A stretch of 64,000 bases of DNA from Tetramitus jugosus (Eukaryota; Protista; Heterolobosea), in NCBI GenBank assembly GCA_937625935.1, contig OW569377.1, forward strand, positions 395,823-459,822, written 5' to 3'. Both the position numbers and the translations under genes were made by a program. Positions within the stretch are counted from its first letter, which is position 1. Each line of letters begins with the position of its first letter. Below are positions 34,978 to 64,000 of the stretch, in pieces. The notes below the pieces were generated by a model. It was not told where the DNA came from and ran no database searches. It worked only from the letters and a program-made list of their open reading frames with translations.

Positions 34978-37900
34978 TTATTCTTCATCGTCAGCAAGCA
35001 TCATTCTCACACTGGAATCAGCATGAACGCAATCAATTGTTTTTGGATCGACCACATGTTCCTCGTTTGTATAGATTTTGTACATGGGTTTGCGCATCAT
35101 TGCTGCAATGTCACCCAACAAAGAAAGCCACTCTTGGGTCATGAACATCAACTTGTTGTTCTTGCTGACCAACTCCTGGATCGGAGAAGCATCTGCTACT
35201 TGATCCTCTGATGTCAGTACCACAGAACCGAACATTACAAGTTTGACGTATTCGTAGACTCGCTCTGCCACAGAAGTATAGCTCTTTTTGCTCTGTGCTA
35301 GCAGCACAGTTTGAACAACAGCACAAGGATTGAGTGCGATTTGATTTTCATCGGTCAAGCGCGTGAACCATTCGGGTAATGGATGATCTGGATGACACGT
35401 CCATATTTTCGTGACGAGTGTGCGGAATGCTTCCTCTTCAACTTTGATCTCTTGATATTCGTTGCCATCATCAAAGAGCATTTTCAGGCTGAATGATTGT
35501 ACTTGAGCTTGAATGAACTCTTGATTCTCATGGTTAAAGTGGAATAACAATGGAACAATACTATCACCAGGCAGTGAAAAGCCCTCCACAGTTCCATCAT
35601 TGTAGTTGACGGAGATGATGGAAGGATTAGAATTATCGAGAGTTAAATTACCATAGCTACGGGTTGGACCAAAGGACGCATTGGCATGCTTGGACTTTGC
35701 CATTTGTTGCTGGGACACACGTTCTCCTAGTTTGGTAAATACATCCTTATTTTTCACTGTCCACTCAGTAACACTGCTAAGTTTGTGTTTAAACGCTGGT
35801 TGCGAAGGTCTAATAACTGCATCACTAGCTTCATTTGCCAGACAAACATACATTCCATTTGATCGATCAAAATCTTGGAGAGTCAAATTGAAAAATGAAT
35901 AGCAACAACCACTCTGAATAAAGTCCCATCCAATAATTCTCGTTTCGCTTTCACGAAGTCGGATTAACAGTATTCTATCATCTGTTGATCCATCAGTTAC
36001 ATATATTTCCTTCACTGTGAATGTAAAGTTGTTCTTTTTTGATGTGTACGACTTTGGCGGTGCTGTCGAGAGAACTACACCTACAAAGTCAAACTGGTGA
36101 TTCATATCTGTGTTTGATAGCTCCGTGATAGATAGTGGGATTCGTTGATAGACATTCAATTTAACTTTCTCTTCATCGCTCATATCTCGTGCTCTCTTGA
36201 TAACACGCCAACACGTCGAACGCGAGGCAGATAATGAAAGATGAATATCCTGACCGCCAGAATAATTGTTCACTTGAAGGTTGTAAATTCGTACTTGGTT
36301 GCCTTCTTCGAATACTTCCATTGCTTCATCCCCTGCGTCATATATTCTAAATATACATTCATTTTGATAAGAATCAATCCGACCATCTTTTTGTCGGTGA
36401 GGGCAACAATCTCTGATCTTGATGTCTAGCGTTCGGGTGACCTCTCTTTGTACTTCGTCCATCTCGCTTTTAATTCGGTCCTCAAGTTCAAGCATCTCTC
36501 TGGCTTGTTGATTGTCAGCGTAGCTCTGATATGCTCTTTGTTGATCAAGAGTTAGCAATGAAAATTCGGCATTTGGATCACCATGCTTTTGCAGGGCTTT
36601 ATACAAGGAATATCCATCAGTTAATGTTTTCAAAGTAGCTCTCGACACAGGTTTCCATCTTTGTCTCTCCTCTCGCTTCTCTTGCTCCATTTCCTTTATA
36701 ACATCTTGAGCAATTTTTTCTCGACTAATACTCTCTCGCTCTTCTACTAGTCTAGATGCTTCTATTTCTGCTCTGTCAGAGCGAATAATGTTCGGCAAGT
36801 TTTGAGCTTTCCTCTTTTCCATGTGAAGCACAGGAAATCTCTTCTGTACGACGATATCGAGACAAGGAATACCACCTCCCTCTTTATGAATAGACTTGAT
36901 GTTCACCCTAAAGTTCTCTTGACATTGGAATCCCAAAGGTGCGTCCCATCTTGCCTTCCTAACACCATTAATGTGCAATAGTAAGTACATGGAAGATGTA
37001 ATCTCTAAGGGTGGTACACCATTATCTGCTCCGACTATTTGAGTACCACATAGGCGAAGTTTTTGACCTTCAACCAGCTTTCCAAAATTTCTGAGTCTCA
37101 ATAGGGGATCATCAAGCTTGGCTAATATGCTGTACCAGCCATCTGTAAGTTCAATCATGTAATCATCCAAGTCTGAATTCGTGCGCATTGACATTGGTGG
37201 GGAGAGTGATGCGACACAGAGAACCATATATGGCTGAGGTGTCGCATCCTTTTCAGTAATTTTTGCAATTGAAGATCGCTTACCAGTACAGTACTCACGA
37301 TCATATCTAAAGATAAGCTGTGATAGTGTCTGCTCTGGTGTCAGAAATTTCGAAGCACACTTGGTTGAAAATCGACGTTCATATGAAGCCAACTTCCATA
37401 CTATCCATCTAAAGTGATTTTGGACCCACAGATTTGTCACTATGTGCTCCGCAGCTCCCAAATGCAATAACAAGAGTCTAAATGTCTTAAATCCAATGGA
37501 TGCACTAGTGTTAGTTGGGAAAGAACTTGACCCTGAATCATGGTCACATTTGAAGTTCTTATTGTTTTGAGCCTCTTCAATAAGACTTAAAAAGTTCGAG
37601 GACACAGAGAACGATGCATCAAACCGAAAATCTTGAGCAGATTGGCTCGTCATGTAAAGAATCTTTTGGTTGACTTGAGTCAGTGCGAGAGAATACAGAG
37701 ATTTGGCATCTTGAGCGCTTGCAAGATTAGATAATCTTATCTTATTGGCTCGACCTGGCTTCTTAACATTAAGCCAACTTGGTGCTGTAATTTTTAGTGA
37801 GGATGGCTTGACCGGAGCAGGAGCTGGTGTTCGACCTAGATTAACTCTTGGCGCTCCAGGCGTCAAGGGTGGTGTCACAGGTGTGGCAACCTTGAAAGGT

Positions 37901-40152
37901 GTGACAAACTTGTTTCTCTTGTGTGTCAATGCACTCTTATTGGGAGTCACAAATTCAGGTGATTTCTTCCCTGGTGTTTGCTGAGAAGGGCTCGATACAT
38001 CAGATCGGACCGGTGTGTTGGCAGAGGGAGTAACTCTACGTGGTCGTGCACCAAGGATAGATTTAGTTACTGGAGTACCCACCTTCCGAGTTTGAGAAGA
38101 TGATATCACTTGTTGTTGTGTGCCTGATGCATTACATGGGAGTTCCTTGTTTGGGGATGATCCTGTCACCATCAACGATTGTTGTTTCTCAACCGTCTCT
38201 TTCTTTCCAGTACCACTGTCGGATTCATCCTTTTTCGGGGCCAATCTCCTCTCTGCAGCCTTCAGTTTTTCAGCAGAAAAGTCCAGCTTCTTCCCACGTC
38301 CCGAGGAAAACAGACTTCCAATGTCAGTCACTGGTGGTCTACTCTCAGGTCCTCTTGTCTGAATAGAGGATGCATCGTCATTGATCGTTGATAATCTCGT
38401 CTCTGTCTCTTGTTGCTCTTCAACTGTCTGCTCTCGACTACTGGAGGCAGGAGATTCACTATCCTTACTTGTTACCTTCGATATCTCCTCAGATTTTTTT
38501 TTCTTACTCAACAAGCTCTCTGCCTTGTTCAACTTTTCTGAGGAAAGTGCAATTGACTTTCCCCTCGCTGAAGCGAATAAAGAAAAACCACCTCCTTTGC
38601 TTGGTTTCTCTGTCTCCAGTGACATCAATGATTGGTCCTTCTCTAATTCACTCTTCCCATTTGTTACATCAGATACATCATCAGAGTTATTCTTTTTCTT
38701 ACTCAACAAGCTTTCAGCTTTGTTCAATTTTTCTGAAGAAAGTGCAATTGACTTTCCCCTGGCTGAGGCAAACAAAGAAAAACCACTTCCGCTTCTTGGT
38801 TTCTCTGTCTCCAATTCCGGCAATAGATGTGCCTGCTCTACGTCACTATTCGTATTTGGTACCTTCGATATCTCCTCAGATTTCTTTTTCTTACTCAACA
38901 AGCTCTCTGCCTTGTTCAACTTTTCTGAGGAAAGTGCAATTGACTTTCCCCTCGCTGAAGCAAATAAAGAAAAACCACTTCCATTGCTTGGTTTCTCTGT
39001 CTCCAGTGGCATCAATGATTGTGCCTTCTGTAACGTCTCACTAGAAAAAGATAACGACCTCCCAGTAGCAGAACGAAACAGGGACGAAATATCATCGCTA
39101 TCAGCGCCAATCGAGGATATGATAATCTCTTGTGGTTGTTGTACATGGGTATCGTATTGATCGTTATGGTCATTAAGGTCAGTTTCGAACTCGCCCAGCT
39201 TGTTTCTCTTGCTCATGTGTACAGGAGATGAATCTTCATTTTCGTGTTCTACCCTTGTTCTTTTTCTGTTCTTTGAGCTACTACTTGCGGCATTGGTATT
39301 ACTCTCCACTTCTGTCTCCATACGAATCACTTCCATCGCATTGTTGTATCTATTCACTTCGCTATGTACACTAAGACTCTCTTCACTATCAACATTAGAT
39401 TTCGCACCTGGGATGTTCCCCTCTTGAGATGTTTGTTGTTGACTAAATTGACTCATCATATCTAACAAGTCAGATAATGCTCCACCTCCACCATTCTGTG
39501 TTGAAGTCTGACTACTGCTGGTGCTGCATTGTGATAGAGGTTGTTGAACATTACTGATTGTTGGTTGATCACTATGATTATTATTACTCTCATCAGTAGT
39601 TGTTTGTCTGCTATGAGTGAAATTGGTACTCTTGTTGGCCTTATTCTTTGTTAACAAACTCTGAGCTTGATTCAACTTTTCCGAAGACAATGTGATCGTT
39701 TTTCCCCGAGCAGATGTAAACAAAGAAAATCCACCAATACTACCACCACCATTAGTGAGGTTTTTATCTGTATCGAATGTGTCCAATGATTGTATCGTCA
39801 ATGGGGCATCATCTGCCTTCTTCGAAATTGTGATACAAACTTTTGATTGTTTAACAGGCGGATCAACAACAACAATTTGTTCGTTGTTATTATTATCATC
39901 TGTGTCATCAATGACTCTATCATCATCATCACTAATTTCTTCATTGTTGTTATCAGTATTATGGATCACTAGTGGTTCAATGACATTTAACACTGGTTGA
40001 CTCGGTGGTTCCTCCATAACAATGTCATCATCATCGCTCGATTCGTCATCCTCCAACAAAATGACAATATTTTTGGATTGTTCCGAGGTAGTGTATTGAA
40101 TTGGTTGCTGCTCTGTATCATCAATGTCTATAATGATTGGATCGTTGCGCAT
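34978..40152 (-). CDS. BRCA2: BRCA2 homologue (about 6 BRC repeats, helical domain, OB folds, tower)
   Basis: FxSAxGK-type BRC repeats; WVQNHFRWIVWKLASYERRF, IELTDGWYSI, ARWDAPLGF. First ATG at 40152. Confidence 0.93.
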   Translation of the reverse strand: MRNDPIIIDIDDTEQQPIQYTTSEQSKNIVILLEDDESSDDDDIVMEEPPSQPVLNVIEPLVIHNTDNNNEEISDDDDRVIDDTDDNNNNEQIVVVDPPVKQSKVCITISKKADDAPLTIQSLDTFDTDKNLTNGGGSIGGFSLFTSARGKTITLSSEKLNQAQSLLTKNKANKSTNFTHSRQTTTDESNNNHSDQPTISNVQQPLSQCSTSSSQTSTQNGGGGALSDLLDMMSQFSQQQTSQEGNIPGAKSNVDSEESLSVHSEVNRYNNAMEVIRMETEVESNTNAASSSSKNRKRTRVEHENEDSSPVHMSKRNKLGEFETDLNDHNDQYDTHVQQPQEIIISSIGADSDDISSLFRSATGRSLSFSSETLQKAQSLMPLETEKPSNGSGFSLFASARGKSIALSSEKLNKAESLLSKKKKSEEISKVPNTNSDVEQAHLLPELETEKPRSGSGFSLFASARGKSIALSSEKLNKAESLLSKKKNNSDDVSDVTNGKSELEKDQSLMSLETEKPSKGGGFSLFASARGKSIALSSEKLNKAESLLSKKKKSEEISKVTSKDSESPASSSREQTVEEQQETETRLSTINDDASSIQTRGPESRPPVTDIGSLFSSGRGKKLDFSAEKLKAAERRLAPKKDESDSGTGKKETVEKQQSLMVTGSSPNKELPCNASGTQQQVISSSQTRKVGTPVTKSILGARPRRVTPSANTPVRSDVSSPSQQTPGKKSPEFVTPNKSALTHKRNKFVTPFKVATPVTPPLTPGAPRVNLGRTPAPAPVKPSSLKITAPSWLNVKKPGRANKIRLSNLASAQDAKSLYSLALTQVNQKILYMTSQSAQDFRFDASFSVSSNFLSLIEEAQNNKNFKCDHDSGSSSFPTNTSASIGFKTFRLLLLHLGAAEHIVTNLWVQNHFRWIVWKLASYERRFSTKCASKFLTPEQTLSQLIFRYDREYCTGKRSSIAKITEKDATPQPYMVLCVASLSPPMSMRTNSDLDDYMIELTDGWYSILAKLDDPLLRLRNFGKLVEGQKLRLCGTQIVGADNGVPPLEITSSMYLLLHINGVRKARWDAPLGFQCQENFRVNIKSIHKEGGGIPCLDIVVQKRFPVLHMEKRKAQNLPNIIRSDRAEIEASRLVEERESISREKIAQDVIKEMEQEKREERQRWKPVSRATLKTLTDGYSLYKALQKHGDPNAEFSLLTLDQQRAYQSYADNQQAREMLELEDRIKSEMDEVQREVTRTLDIKIRDCCPHRQKDGRIDSYQNECIFRIYDAGDEAMEVFEEGNQVRIYNLQVNNYSGGQDIHLSLSASRSTCWRVIKRARDMSDEEKVKLNVYQRIPLSITELSNTDMNHQFDFVGVVLSTAPPKSYTSKKNNFTFTVKEIYVTDGSTDDRILLIRLRESETRIIGWDFIQSGCCYSFFNLTLQDFDRSNGMYVCLANEASDAVIRPSQPAFKHKLSSVTEWTVKNKDVFTKLGERVSQQQMAKSKHANASFGPTRSYGNLTLDNSNPSIISVNYNDGTVEGFSLPGDSIVPLLFHFNHENQEFIQAQVQSFSLKMLFDDGNEYQEIKVEEEAFRTLVTKIWTCHPDHPLPEWFTRLTDENQIALNPCAVVQTVLLAQSKKSYTSVAERVYEYVKLVMFGSVVLTSEDQVADASPIQELVSKNNKLMFMTQEWLSLLGDIAAMMRKPMYKIYTNEEHVVDPKTIDCVHADSSVRMMLADDEE
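38473..39020. repeat. Three near-identical nucleotide copies of a BRC-repeat unit in BRCA2
   Basis: Units at about 38473-38632, 38690-38812 and 38860-39020; first and third offset by 387 bp. Confidence 0.85.
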
Positions 40153-40439
40153 GTTGTTTGTTGGTTTTTGTTGTTCGGGTTTCTCCTCAAAAATTCCACA
40201 AAAATTTAGAAAAAACTCGAACTTCACACGTGTCGGGAATTGTGAAGCAACTCAGTGCTGAACAAGAGATTAAGGTTTCGCAGTCGTCTTATGCTCGGCA
40301 GTAGCTTCTCTCTTCCCATTCGTGCAATGCATGAACAAGCAGCACCAAAAAGAAAAAGAGTTGTAAATTATTCGTTTAACGGATTTATTATCTCCGACTC
40401 CGACAGCTCACAAACGCAGAACTGAGTTAGAACGATATT

Positions 40440-41474: not shown

Positions 41475-41770
41475 TATTGGTTGGTAGGTTTGTTTGTTGG
41501 ATGGTCTTGGAATTCAATATTGAATATTGAATAACTTTTAATTGCAGGGAAGGGAGGGGTGCAAGGTGTAGTTTCCAATACAGTGGTAGACAAGTCCACA
41601 GTCGAGTTTGCAAGGGGGCAGCTTTTTGAAACATAAAAGAGAGTTGGTGGGGAGTAATGCAAGTTGTCAACTTCAAGTGCAGCGCTCCAGATTTGAGACC
41701 AACCGGAATTTTTGGCACTTTCGACAGCGTTTTCGGGAAAATGGGAGTGACCCCCTTCCCTGCATGCATG

Positions 41771-41885
41771 TGAATGATATATTGGCTTAAGGTGGCGGTC
41801 TACTGTCGATCAAGCCATAATAAAAAAATTATGGTTTCCCGATAACGCTCCTACATAATCGGGATTTACATAGCAGCTTGATGGA
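41771..41885 (-). ncRNA. Putative Fanzor omega-RNA (scaffold in the element 3' end, guide from flanking DNA); boundaries approximate
   Basis: Stem-loops ccataat/attatgg (41815-41834) and tcccgat/atcggga (41837-41864), and an alternative long-range pairing atcaagc/gcttgat (41809-41815 / 41876-41882). All lie between the end of the Fanzor ORF and the TIR, where TnpB/Fanzor omega-RNAs are encoded. Confidence 0.6.
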
Positions 41886-43779
41886 GTGAGCCTTGGAGGT
41901 GTTCCACCATTTTGATTAATTCTTTTGCGACCTTTTTCTTCCTCTTGAAGGCATCGGGACGTGACTGTCCATCCATTTCTGTTCTCAGTAGATGGAGCAT
42001 GTTCTTGGCCGCATTGATGTCTCTGTTGTGAGTCACTAAACATTTAGTGGTTGCACACTGTTTAACTCCACGGACGACAGAGACATTCAACGTTCCATTC
42101 TTGTCTACTCTCTTATGCTTGACTGGCTTCATGTGAGAATGGCAATGATGACATTTCTGACTTGTCATGAACTCGTCGATCATTTTCACTTTGAAGTGCT
42201 CATTCAACTTTTTCAATAGCTTTCCTTTTGGTGTTGGAGCATGTCCTTTGTAACAATGACCAAAACCAGCATTGCCCATCCCAATTAACATGCTTCTTCC
42301 ATTTGTTCTCTTTCGAAAGTCATTCATAACATTGGCAATCGTCTTATCTCTCATTATATAGCTATCCCAATTCAGTCTCTTCACCTTTGGGGTGCAATAA
42401 AAATTCAACAAATCATCCTCGACTTTCAATACAGAATTGATGTGTTCAAGGAACAGACCACTTGTTGGTACACCGGCCTGTTTGATTGAATTTTGGAGTT
42501 CATCCAAGTTCTTCTCATTCATTTCGTTCCATTCTGCTTTGTATTTCAACAATCGCTTGGAGTTTTTTGAATGGTGGGACAGATGTCTATATGTTTTGTT
42601 AGACAACTCCCACTTCTTGCCATCTGAATCAACACAACTCACCAACGTAACAATACCCGGGTCAATCCCAACCAAATATTCAGCACCTTCGTTCATACTT
42701 GTTTCTTTCTTTCTCTTCTTTGCTTCTTTCTGGCCCTTGGATTCCTTTGCCTTATTGTTCTTGTGATTGCCAACGAGTTGATGTCTGATAACAACAGAGG
42801 CCTGAATACCGTCAGTTCTGATTGAGTCGATTTGAATCTTCTTTGTTCCAACATTCAAACACTTGAGATTACACTTCAATTCAGTTGACTCATCGCCCTT
42901 CTTTTGTCTTCCTTGTTTCTTCTGTTTAAGCATATCAACTAATTCCTTTGTGCCAATCTCCATACACCTGCACTTGAAATGAGACAAAGGAAGTAGTGCA
43001 AACGATTTCATATCATTGTTGATCAGAAATTGTTGAACATGCCAGTAAAACTTCAGCATGTTATTGATGTTGTTGTTCACAAATGATTCATCAATTACTT
43101 CATCAGTTTTAGCACCAACAAGTGCTCGAACCTCTCGGATCAACACAGGAATCGTCTCTATCAACTCTTTTGGAGGCAATTTGATAAAATCATGGACAGG
43201 AGTGCTAAATGTCAACCTTCTGATAATGTATTCAACAACCCTTCTTTGTTCTGACTTTGGAATAGATGAGTCACTGTGTAGTTGATTCATTCTGACCCTC
43301 AGATACTTCCTCAGTCTTGGTTCCAATGTGAACTTGAGCATGTTGGAGATGTTGACATTGAGAGACCTGGCAACATAATTGATGGACGTGGCAAAACTCT
43401 GATAAATCTTTCTGAGCTTGACTACTACATCGTCCATGTTGACAGACTCGTTGATGAGAATTACGTTATTGTCTCTTGGTTTTGAATTGCGTCCAAACAA
43501 CACAGAACCTAATCTTTGAAGAAACACTTGATCTAATAAAGGGATTTGATAGTTAGACTCCAAATGTCTCAAAACGAATATGTTTATAAATCTTGTGAGT
43601 CGAAGAGCAATCCTTGTAATCTCCAGAGCTTGAGTTTGTATGATTGGTAACAGAGTTGGATGATGCAACAATAGAGACTTCAGACCGACCTTGACCACGT
43701 AATGTGATGAGTATTCATCCTTTTTGACAGTCTCTCTCTTTCTCTTTCTCTTGCCGTCCTTCGGCACGCCTCGTGGCAT
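41866..43779 (-). CDS. Fanzor1 (eukaryotic TnpB-like RNA-guided DNA endonuclease), 637 aa
   Basis: RuvC-I VGIDPG (D373); GxGNAGF..KGHAPTP; rearranged RuvC-II IDEFMTSQKC (E536); Zn finger CHHC...CATTKC; RuvC-III NRDINAAKNM (D587); N-terminal NLS KRKRKR; no introns. Confidence 0.92.
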   Translation of the reverse strand: MPRGVPKDGKRKRKRETVKKDEYSSHYVVKVGLKSLLLHHPTLLPIIQTQALEITRIALRLTRFINIFVLRHLESNYQIPLLDQVFLQRLGSVLFGRNSKPRDNNVILINESVNMDDVVVKLRKIYQSFATSINYVARSLNVNISNMLKFTLEPRLRKYLRVRMNQLHSDSSIPKSEQRRVVEYIIRRLTFSTPVHDFIKLPPKELIETIPVLIREVRALVGAKTDEVIDESFVNNNINNMLKFYWHVQQFLINNDMKSFALLPLSHFKCRCMEIGTKELVDMLKQKKQGRQKKGDESTELKCNLKCLNVGTKKIQIDSIRTDGIQASVVIRHQLVGNHKNNKAKESKGQKEAKKRKKETSMNEGAEYLVGIDPGIVTLVSCVDSDGKKWELSNKTYRHLSHHSKNSKRLLKYKAEWNEMNEKNLDELQNSIKQAGVPTSGLFLEHINSVLKVEDDLLNFYCTPKVKRLNWDSYIMRDKTIANVMNDFRKRTNGRSMLIGMGNAGFGHCYKGHAPTPKGKLLKKLNEHFKVKMIDEFMTSQKCHHCHSHMKPVKHKRVDKNGTLNVSVVRGVKQCATTKCLVTHNRDINAAKNMLHLLRTEMDGQSRPDAFKRKKKVAKELIKMVEHLQGSLHQAAM

Positions 43780-44097
43780 GATGTTATTGTATTTGTTGTG
43801 TGTTGTATTTGTTGTGTGAGTTGAATCAAACAGCGAAAAAGACAGCGCTTTTTAAACCGAGGTAGATGGCCGTTGTCGTTGTAAAGACAGTCTCAACGGA
43901 AATTGTTACAACTGCACCAATTCCGCAGCTTAGAGGAAACTGATACAACATTTATTGTATTTTTTTATAATATATCCACCTATCTATCCAATCTTGAACC
44001 AAACGAAAAACTTTCTCTCTGACACGACAACAACAACGAAAAACACAAGTCGCACAACGAACATCAACAACAACAACAACCAAATCAATCAAAAAAG

Positions 44098-44195
44098 ATG
44101 GAGAGTCGACAAGAGGTGTCTTTTTGCAGCATTTGATCTCTGGTGTTGGCAAGTTGTTGAGTGCTGAGAGAGCGAGTCTGTTCCTTATTCTCTAG
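44098..44195 (+). pseudogene. Captured 5' fragment of a GAF-domain-like gene
   Basis: An A/C-rich leader and ATG, then after a frameshift FLQHLISGVGKLLSAERASLFLI, resembling the GAF 'LLxAERxSLFL' motif. Confidence 0.45.
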
Positions 44196-44204
44196 ATTTG
44201 GTTA

Positions 44205-44955
44205 TTAAATAGCAATCTCGGCATACTTTTCAGAATCACTCCTCTTCTTGGATCTCAAATAGTTGATAGTGTTGCGATAGAAGACATTGGTTGGTGCAAA
44301 GACATCATCAGGAGTCTCCTCTTCTTCAATCTTTGAGATATTGTCAGCGATTAGATCAATGAGACCGTTAATGTACTCGGCAGTCACCTTGTCATTGTCC
44401 TTGTCAAAGTGATAAGCGTACACGTTCAAAATGTCAACAAACAATGGAATTTGTTGTGCAGGCATGCATGCCTTGACAATCTTCAACGACCATTGCAAGC
44501 ATTCAAGTGCCTTTGAACTGTTCTGAAGCTCTTCGTTATTCACGAACGGCCAGAACAGATGAGAGCAAGTGAAGGCAGCTCTGCACTGATCAGGCTTCCT
44601 CAATAGCTTGGATGAGTATTGGCAGGTCTTTGTGGACAATGTGTCATAGTTTTCGCATCTCACAATGCTCAGTGCAATAAACTTTCTCTGTTCATATCCA
44701 AGAGAATGAATAATATCACCATACTTCTCCAACTTCAAAACTGTTAGCACATTGTTGTATGACTCGAGTGGCACCAACAACAATCGCTTCAACATGTCTA
44801 CAATTTCATCTGAAGCAAGTGCAGTGCTATTCAATTGACTAGCAATGTTATTAATAATCTTGTTGACATAGTCAGTGTTATCAGGATATGTTTGAAGAGC
44901 AAGTGTCATCAATGAGATCTGAATACTCAAGTTATCGGACAATTCAACACCTCTC
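44205..44955 (-). pseudogene. VPS35: Captured, internally deleted VPS35 (retromer) fragment
   Basis: SIQISLMTLALQTYPDNTDYVNK..LLVPLESYNNVLTVLKL (middle of VPS35) is fused directly to ENYDTL..SKLLRKPDQCRA..CSHLFW..LECLQ..LFVDILN (C-terminal VPS35). No ATG at the 5' end of the fragment, and a stop lies just upstream. Confidence 0.85.
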
Positions 44956-45165
44956 TAATGGTATCAATAGGACAGAATTTGACAAACATCAGAAAACTCA
45001 TACTCATCATCAGGTCACTCGCATTCACGATGTCCTTCAGAGTGTTTGTTTTCTGTGTTTTGCAAGTTTTTTTTGATGCTGAGCAGCAACTTTGGTGTTG
45101 GTTATGTCTTCTTTTGGCGCCTTTTCCTTGTTTTCCCATTTGTTCCTTGAGGCTTACCGTGCAAA

Positions 45166-45372
45166 TTGCAAAGGAAACGTGGAACCCAGTACTGTCACAT
45201 TCACCAAAACTACACCTCCAATGGACAATTCTATCAAATTGATGATGTTCTGGATTGGAAGTATCAAAATGGTTCTTGGTATGGTTATGTGAAGTGGAAG
45301 GGATTCTACTTGGCATGTTCATGGGAACAATTTGAATTGGTCCCTGGAGGGTGGAGAGTTGTTAATCAATGA
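45166..45372 (+). pseudogene. Chromodomain-like fragment
   Basis: FYQIDDVLDWKYQNGSWYGYVKWKGFYLACSWEQFELV fits the chromodomain consensus (Y.Ve.Il....YLVKWKG....WE). Confidence 0.6.
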
Positions 45373-46098
45373 TAAACAACCTTACAGAAAATATTTAGAC
45401 AACAGAAAGATGACGTTACTCGTTTGGCAAATGCTTTATTTCTTCTTGGGTGGTTCAATCTCGCGTCTTGAAAGAAAACGTCCATCGTCCATCCTCTGAA
45501 CCAATACACACAACAACCGAAATCATCTACTGGAGGAGACTCCAATATGAAACTCTACCAAGTATTGCATCTTTGACTCAGAACTTGTTTAATGACAACG
45601 TGTGGATGACTCATCATCCAAGTGTGTTTTTGTATTCTCCAGAGAGATTCAATGTTCCTGTCAACTAGCCCAAATAAAGAAGCCCGAACCTCCGCCGCAG
45701 AGAAATCACAAAGCACGAAAGCGTTGCTTGTAACCGAGAATTCACAGTATTGTGGATGATTAACACTTGTGTATGGATTCTGATGTTTTTTGATCGACCC
45801 ACATCTTGCTTCTTTTTTCTCAAACAAAAATCATTTTATACGAGGAGCTGGTAGACCGCCACCTTAAAATTTTCTAGAAGAAGAGGAGCAATAATTGTAC
45901 AGCTCACCACAATGCCAACAACAGTTCTTCTCACGAGACAACAGAAGAAGAGTGGACTTCAAAAACACCTGGCATGTTCACTTTTGCGAAGAAGGGAGAT
46001 AGAAAAACGAGGTTTCTGGCGTTGTACTTGAGGAACGCACTCACAATAAACTTGAGTGAATACATCGGTTCGAGAGAGCTTTTATTTTTTTCGCTTCT

Positions 46099-63309: not shown

Positions 63310-64000
63310 TTTGGGTTTGGGTTTGGGTTTGGGTTTGGGTTTGGGTTTGGGTTTGGGTTTGGGTTTGGGTTTGGGTTTGGGTTTGGGTTTGGGTTTGGGT
63401 TTGGGTTTGGGTTTGGGTTTGGGTTTGGGTTTGGGTTTGGGTTTGGGTTTGGGTTTGGGTTTGGGTTTGGGTTTGGGTTTGGGTTTGGGTTTGGGTTTGG
63501 GTTTGGGTTTGGGTTTGGGTTTGGGTTTGGGTTTGGGTTTGGGTTTGGGTTTGGGTTTGGGTTTGGGTTTGGGTTTGGGTTTGGGTTTGGGTTTGGGTTT
63601 GGGTTTGGGTTTGGGTTTGGGTTTGGGTTTGGGTTTGGGTTTGGGTTTGGGTTTGGGTTTGGGTTTGGGTTTGGGTTTGGGTTTGGGTTTGGGTTTGGGT
63701 TTGGGTTTGGGTTTGGGTTTGGGTTTGGGTTTGGGTTTGGGTTTGGGTTTGGGTTTGGGTTTGGGTTTGGGTTTGGGTTTGGGTTTGGGTTTGGGTTTGG
63801 GTTTGGGTTTGGGTTTGGGTTTGGGTTTGGGTTTGGGTTTGGGTTTGGGTTTGGGTTTGGGTTTGGGTTTGGGTTTGGGTTTGGGTTTGGGTTTGGGTTT
63901 GGGTTTGGGTTTGGGTTTGGGTTTGGGTTTGGGTTTGGGTTTGGGTTTTGGGTTGGGGTTTGGGTTTGGGTTTGGGTTTGGGTTTGGGTTTGGGGTTTGG
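63310..64000 (+). repeat. Telomere, (TTTGGG)n
   Basis: About 690 bp of nearly perfect TTTGGG hexamers running to the window end, G-rich strand 5'->3' towards the end. Confidence 0.97.

Follow-up and report, generated by a model that had tools for sequence, protein, structure and literature searches.

We describe a 4073-bp transposable element located in a 64,000-nt stretch of contig OW569377.1 of the heterolobosean Tetramitus jugosus (hereafter, the window) and encoding a nuclease of the Fanzor1 type. It is likely, in our judgement, that this element belongs to a non-autonomous family of cut-and-paste transposons which carry a functional-looking Fanzor1 and use it for restorative homing, and that the window copy is a repair product whose omega-RNA scaffold is broken. 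Within this reading we infer DNA cleavage, the transposon-adjacent motif (TAM), the loss of scaffold function, homing and the identity of the transposase. Coordinates are those of the window (Table 1), where the element reads on the minus strand; genome-wide counts refer to 26.35 Mb in 56 contigs.

A Fanzor1 protein in a TTAA-flanked element

The open reading frame (ORF) of 637 aa is uninterrupted and contains the RuvC residues D373 (context GIDPG), E536 (IDEFMTSQKC) and D587 (NRD) along with the four cysteines of a Zn finger; on these features the ORF scan and the alignment agree with a preliminary description of the window made from the sequence alone. C543 follows E536, the RuvC-II Glu standing about six residues ahead of the Zn finger, and the positions of the triad and of the Zn finger are invariant across the close family. 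Putative nuclear localization signals are seen as basic runs at residues 7-20 and ~353-357. The sole significant sequence match in PDB is SpuFz1 (E 4e-13). The AlphaFold model (pLDDT 91) has as top Foldseek/VIA matches three Fanzor1 structures (Spu, Pp and Gt), matched at full length with TMq 0.61-0.69 and Z 19-22; the comparison with SpuFz1, proposed in the preliminary description, gave TMq 0.69. Scores of the model were far lower for mimivirus Fanzor2 ApmFz2 (TMq 0.21, Z 12) and for ISDra2 TnpB (TMq 0.24, Z 12). By size, residues and modelled fold the window protein is a Fanzor1, an earlier assignment that the SpuFz1 match and the structure scores bear out. A Fanzor2/IS607 identity (about 500 aa, a serine recombinase partner, a pseudoknot and no terminal inverted repeat, TIR) was considered and rejected on the ORF, the fold and the structure match. 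The protein would be expected to cut DNA in an RNA-guided, TAM-dependent manner. Its close relatives in metagenomes are few, with 58-74% identity over the searched region, while the remaining ones have ~25-35%.

On both sides the element is bounded by TTAA and a 13-bp TIR, together making a perfectly matched 17-nt inverted pair (41787-41803 / 45851-45867), as had been reported. The 17-mer occurs with two or fewer mismatches at 39 genome sites versus six for a control, which argues against chance, and each of its copies has its own flanking DNA. A TIR element with a target site duplication (TSD) is a eukaryotic, non-IS607 transposon context, as expected for Fanzor1.

An empty allele was found in contigs of two read sets, X2 (the same organism) and X3 (groundwater), where position 41745 is joined to 45864 with a single TTAA. 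Because this allele has one TTAA, the TSD is confirmed and the insertion is polymorphic; the same allele upholds the young age, the boundaries and the TTAA given for the insertion in the preliminary description. Depth of the empty allele in X2 is 54, about one haplotype. The insertion is recent and probably heterozygous in the sequenced strain, with X2 likely to be the source sample. The transposon had also been called intact, a word that the sequence does not support for this copy: of the two subterminal repeats expected at its left end one is missing, and no transposase is encoded in it.

The predicted omega-RNA scaffold and the mosaic family

In the last ~100 nt of the sister copies, folding predicts stem 1, a linker of a single G and stem 2, the latter closed by an internal TTAAGG and the terminal CC with the 3' TTAA. 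The nested two-stem fold is predicted in end types A, A' and B, and in three metagenome relatives with 41-74% protein identity (z -2.6 to -6.7). Six pairs of stem 1 are changed on both sides (0/500 shuffles, a count that is not a probability, given the few independent lineages), and the closing 6 bp are invariant. Prediction and covariation give for the family, in this way, stems without a pseudoknot and a TSD within the scaffold, which is the layout published for Fanzor1 (PMC10432273, PMC10711439). A pseudoknot between the internal TTAAGGTG and the element end was also considered and rejected; folding gives a nested stem, as published for Fanzor1.

The window copy departs from this fold. Between its stop codon and the element end lie 75 nt (85 nt in most sisters); the 75 bp reported earlier as the distance to the TIR is correct for the element end, the inner edge of the TIR being 62 nt away. 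Through a deletion of 10 nt the 6-bp closing helix, invariant in every other aligned row, has lost its 5' strand, and the predicted RNA refolds: both stems are lost and the last 19 nt are unpaired, the only such case among six folded. By its predicted fold the window copy lacks the scaffold of its own that a complete Fanzor1 locus would have, and this scaffold is probably dead. With its own scaffold broken, the copy could at best serve sister omega-RNAs as a source of protein and would be unable to target its empty allele. In a cleavage assay the 3' region of this locus would probably give a false negative, and a sister scaffold would be needed. The preliminary description had presented the system as complete and probably active; the deletion and the predicted refolding speak against completeness, and the refolding, together with a failure to find a transposase with matching ends, against activity of this copy. 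Scaffold deletions, of 5, 29 and 53 nt, are present in three other copies.

The genome contains ~25 long copies with 65-98% amino-acid identity, at least 19 full-length ones retaining every catalytic and Zn residue; dN/dS versus the window copy is 0.14-0.19 for the divergent alleles, which indicates purifying selection. One nuclease is borne by two TIR families, type A (the window copy, with variant A') and type B. The copies that were read have their own flanks and TTAA/GG...CC/TTAA ends, TTAA being present at 24/25 right ends and 16/16 left ends. The one exception (L009, on contig C24) has CC/TTGG instead of CC/TTAA at its right end and an ORF with an internal in-frame deletion. The base at +1 after the right TTAA is G in 12/24 copies (background 18%, P 3e-4; GG in five, GGT in three), and the mirror C before the left TTAA is found in 1/16, an orientation-specific target bias; the window empty allele has T at +1.

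The alleles are heavily mosaic: runs tests gave z between -6.6 and -15.5. Copies whose ORFs are only ~60% alike agree at 95-100% in the leader and in the ~290 nt at the 3' end, and some RuvC stretches are the same in copies of either end type. Among metagenome relatives, type-A right ends accompany proteins at 74% and 58% identity and a type-B end accompanies one at 41%. On contig C32 a Fanzor 41-44% like that of the window lies between B ends; the Fanzor of this 2.2-kb element (G000:C32:2808-4989) gave a match split into two segments, and the element may stand for the B family in its original form. On the simplest reading, B elements took up the A-lineage Fanzor. The A-to-B swap lies in distal stem 2, with the TTAA-closed base kept; SpuFz1 binds the stem-2 base, and the distal part is dispensable (PMC10432273).

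Several more distant or partial matches were seen. Two loci (L046:2437-4556 and L047:1631-3897) encode Fanzors 61-66% like that of the window; since TAGA/TCTA closes stem 2 in their predicted folds and a TTAA TIR is missing, these kin are probably on another carrier. At L051:620-644, in a metagenome copy with 97% likeness to the window protein, deletions have taken most of the 3' ORF and scaffold, but CCTTAA is still present. Partnerless TIR-like 17-mers with no listed Fanzor match (G000 contigs C10:247203, C24:126315, C11:254181, C25:365140, C47:119538 and C15:15258) may be solo ends, ghost omega-RNA loci or chance. TIR matches in viral contigs, isolated 17-mers without a Fanzor, were dismissed as chance.

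Proposed homing, the carrier and rival explanations

In the mechanism that we propose, a transposase acting in trans (Kolobok-type, judging by the ends) would excise the element and insert it at TTAA. In copies with a sound scaffold the 3'-end transcript would fold into stem 1, G and stem 2, and the next ~15 nt of the flank would serve as guide. The nuclease would recognise TTAA plus flank, a junction present only at the empty site, and cut it; repair from a filled copy would then restore the element at the cut site. Template switching between copies and host genes during such repair may yield mosaic ORFs, swapped ends, Vps35 cargo and small deletions between short repeats, and the window copy would be one of the products, its protein intact and its scaffold broken.

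The position of the guide had been claimed to be readable from the locus, and the analogy with SpuFz1 and SfAV Fanzor1 supports this. Compared with the predicted guide, the empty allele is mismatched at two positions, +1 and +12, and carries an indel (+20 to +25) close to the SpuFz1 cut position; two changes in 15 nt have P of about 0.01-0.04 at the divergence of the flank (one locus). In a second allele of X3 the whole target is deleted. With a broken scaffold and a mismatched target the window site is predicted not to be homed, and it is not, which fits the homing model without proving it. No guide among the copies examined is aimed at the element itself. A scar that would fit repair of a Fanzor cut is seen in the copy on C48, which has no left TIR and starts with TTAA and 9 nt of its own right flank, with CGT microhomology at the joint.

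Several points weigh against the homing reading. The scar was examined in one copy, and 3/9 nt of it are microhomology. Mosaics and deletions can also arise, with no Fanzor cut, when the gap left by excision is repaired in the ordinary way. The guide mismatches come from one locus, and the presence of the same empty allele in an independent sample means that it may be an old polymorphism. Cleavage and homing are predicted from sequence. The 10-nt deletion is known from the assembly, and the contigs of the read sets list no junction of the window copy itself. Depth of the scaffold bin is 15-55x that of the ORF body in RNA-type runs (X15 and X7) versus 2-3x in DNA runs, which suggests expression, although these are unstranded contig depths, a weak measure, and X7 only looks like RNA. 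The searches described below gave no transposase, so that the present mobility of the element is putative.

That the window copy is nevertheless a complete active system, its own 3' end yielding a working omega-RNA, seems to us very improbable. The protein is intact, the TIRs are perfect and the insertion is recent, and the protein might impose the fold or the leftover TTA might pair partly; the deletion, however, takes a strand of an invariant 6-bp helix, stem 1 and the stem-2 base are predicted to be lost, and the empty allele persists. It is slightly easier to imagine, if still quite improbable, that the Fanzor is active and has little part in the spread, the mosaics, cargo and scars being left by ordinary gap repair after excision and by ectopic gene conversion. 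Products of gap repair are known from cut-and-paste elements, and from Pack-TYPE ones, that carry no nuclease passenger. Similar chimeras with shared ends appear in Bao and Jurka 2013 (PMC3627910). What this explanation leaves unaccounted for is the purifying selection on the ORF, the TSD-closed scaffold kept across end swaps and the C48 left junction, where TTAA is followed by the element's own right flank.

As to the carrier, termini of PiggyBac elements are CC...GG. A TTAA TSD with 5'-RR...YY-3' termini is the signature of Kolobok, set apart from piggyBac (PMC9587614); the family has TTAA TSDs and GG...CC termini with TIRs in types A, A' and B, and these ends point to a Kolobok-type carrier. 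A piggyBac or another TTAA/TTAN family as carrier is unlikely in our view. The genome has 12 piggyBac-type transposase matches, piggyBac is among the listed Fanzor carriers (PMC13565253), and unclassified Fanzor1 elements with TTAN and a 13-bp TIR are recorded in PMC3627910; against this, the GG...CC ends carry the RR...YY signature (PMC9587614), and for these ends and for want of a piggyBac match at any TIR site found, a piggyBac carrier was rejected. The piggyBac-type genes (on C7, C18, C30, C34, C39 and others; identical pairs C18/C30 and C18/C39, with long open frames) are separate families, possibly active. An autonomous partner, with matching ends and a Kolobok DDE transposase (C/DxxH signature), was sought: the closed type-A pairs all hold a Fanzor, and searches with left-end DNA and a 10-nt TIR pattern gave no autonomous element. 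The transposase proxies PF20700 and PF18758 had no match genome-wide (a search with no positive control), and PF00929 matches lie away from the TIR sites. The metagenome scan gave no locus tying these ends to a transposase.

Going further than the homing reading itself, one could propose that Kolobok is an unlisted carrier of Fanzor and that eukaryotic homing is under way in this amoeba: emptied or homologous empty sites would be cut by the nuclease, repair by copying would carry it between two transposon families, shuffle its alleles and capture host genes, and the surviving empty alleles would be those that mismatch the guide or face a broken scaffold. We put this forward tentatively and with more doubt than belief. 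Kolobok is missing from the Fanzor carriers given in the literature searched. In the same literature (Repbase being outside the search) no paper joins Fanzor with Heterolobosea, and the Saito supplements name neither Tetramitus nor Kolobok.

Cargo, known relatives and significance

The 2.1 kb upstream of the Fanzor gene are a patchwork of a short-A left arm, an A' module and two pieces of Vps35, the middle and 3' pieces being joined in frame across a 600-nt gap. Since the middle piece keeps a likely intron, Vps35 was captured at the DNA level. The shared Vps35 piece (44553-45113 in the window, and ~20 sisters) is 800-1400x deeper than the Fanzor ORF body in X15 (a soil metatranscriptome) and X7 (RNA-like, from the organism itself); DNA runs show no such excess (1-3x), and these unstranded contig depths suggest expression. 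The variant expressed at 44575 is that of the C50 and C16 copies, not that of the window copy. Part of the left arm (45522-45733) has 91-96% matches to C14, C28 and C45, a further captured or repeated host piece. The host contig ends in a telomere (TTTGGG repeats at 63311-64000), ~17 kb from the element, which sits among genes for BRCA2 and Cluap1; the BRCA2 homologue (34978-40227) has several near-identical BRC-like repeats.

Table 1. Positions of the features of the element in the window
Feature	Position	Strand	Basis
Predicted 15-nt guide, flank after TSD	41772..41786	-	position by analogy with SpuFz1 and SfAV Fanzor1 (PMC10432273, PMC10711439)
TTAA TSD, right (3') end; last 4 nt of predicted omega-RNA scaffold	41787..41790	.	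single TTAA in empty allele (joint 41745-45864, X2 and X3); pairs in stem 2 of sisters
Scaffold of the omega-RNA, predicted: stop codon inside stem 1 (41877-41847); linker G at 41846; then stem 2	41787..41877	-	folding; depths in RNA-type runs (weak measure)
13-bp TIR of type A on the right; element ends in ...CC	41791..41803	-	inverted pair and genome-wide matches
10-nt deletion specific to this copy, between two TTA repeats; takes 5' strand of stem-2 base	41842..41845	-	sister alignment; majority form seen as loose ends at 41843/41845 in X2, X3, X15
Fanzor1 ORF, 637 aa; D373/E536/D587 and Zn finger intact	41866..43779	-	ORF scan, alignment, structure model
5' leader/promoter module common to long copies; last ~160 nt in all copies, 95-99%	43781..44129	-	copy comparison
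3' piece of Vps35, captured, stop codon included; matches presumed host gene G000:C22:84173-84625 at 100%; only in window copy, C50, C16, C27	44204..44656	-	genome and profile comparison
Captured Vps35 middle piece, likely 49-nt GT-AG intron (45003-44955); in ~20 long copies	44654..45078	-	genome and copy comparison
Cargo module common to A'-type copies; weak chromodomain similarity (E 0.078, under cut-off)	45150..45370	+	copy comparison, profile search
Left arm derived from short 2.7-kb type-A family; holds a single subterminal CTCCTCGTATAAA repeat (18 nt) in place of two	45393..45850	-	comparison with sister copies
13-bp TIR of type A on the left; element starts with GG...	45851..45863	-	inverted pair and genome-wide matches
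TTAA TSD, left end; predicted TAM core	45864..45867	.	copy ends and empty allele

The nearest characterised system is SpuFz1 with its element Spu-1 of Spizellomyces punctatus (PDB 8GKH, 9CEU-9CEZ; PMC10432273). The two proteins share fold, length (637 versus 638 aa; 18% identity) and the rearranged RuvC-II, and Spu-1 is likewise a multicopy non-autonomous TIR element, with a two-stem omega-RNA that runs without a pseudoknot to the element end and with no transposase found in the host. Its target, however, is of CATA type as opposed to TTAA here and, unlike Spu-1, the window family has two families of 13-bp TIRs starting with GG, host-gene cargo, markedly mosaic alleles with identities as low as 65% and, in the window copy, a broken scaffold. 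The insect-virus Fanzor1 elements of the SFav-1/HVav-1 group (PMC3627910; PMC10711439) are also non-autonomous, with a 4-bp TTAN TSD, 13-bp TIRs, an unassigned carrier, and an RNA scaffold that incorporates TIR and TSD; the window family differs in its nuclear protist host, strict TTAA, cargo and two end families. The Kolobok superfamily, reported from the related heterolobosean Naegleria, has the same TTAA TSD and 5'-RR...YY-3' termini (PMC9587614), whereas for the window family a transposase was found neither in the element nor elsewhere.

In restorative homing by IS605/IS607 TnpB (PMC13565253) the TAM is the insertion target, the guide is the 3' flank and the empty site is the sole substrate, as proposed here. 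It has been shown in bacteria only, and a 2026 review limits the demonstration to bacterial TnpB and IscB (PMC13565253); the present case would be that of a eukaryotic TIR element with a TSD, where homing is deduced. Shared ends around different Fanzors and captured host pieces are described, in the corresponding entries of PMC3627910, for the Fanzor1 families CRe-1/2/3, DFa-1/2/3 and MCi-2, and are found in Pack-TYPE elements. The same entries of 2013, which include Chlamydomonas cases, give 5'-truncated copies with flanking 7-19-bp duplications after a fixed tetranucleotide, which resemble the C48 scar; carriers and hosts differ, and in those entries the duplications are not interpreted as Fanzor cuts.

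Fanzor1 itself is a known family; what is new in the present one is the Kolobok-type ends, the two end families and the cargo. As a tool it offers a Fanzor1 with a predicted TTAA TAM whose natural alleles span 65-98% identity; the gain is incremental, and the window copy is not ready-made. The family shows how a Fanzor passes from one transposon to another: the end is exchanged in the part of stem 2 that can be spared, and the TTAA-closed base stays. This culturable protist with two assembled haplotypes makes the natural role of Fanzors testable: its ~25 young insertions have a guide apiece and scaffolds that are sound or broken, and at least one of the sites is polymorphic, which gives built-in controls. 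If homing is true, a sound scaffold facing a matching empty allele should be rare, and broken or mismatched pairs should persist.

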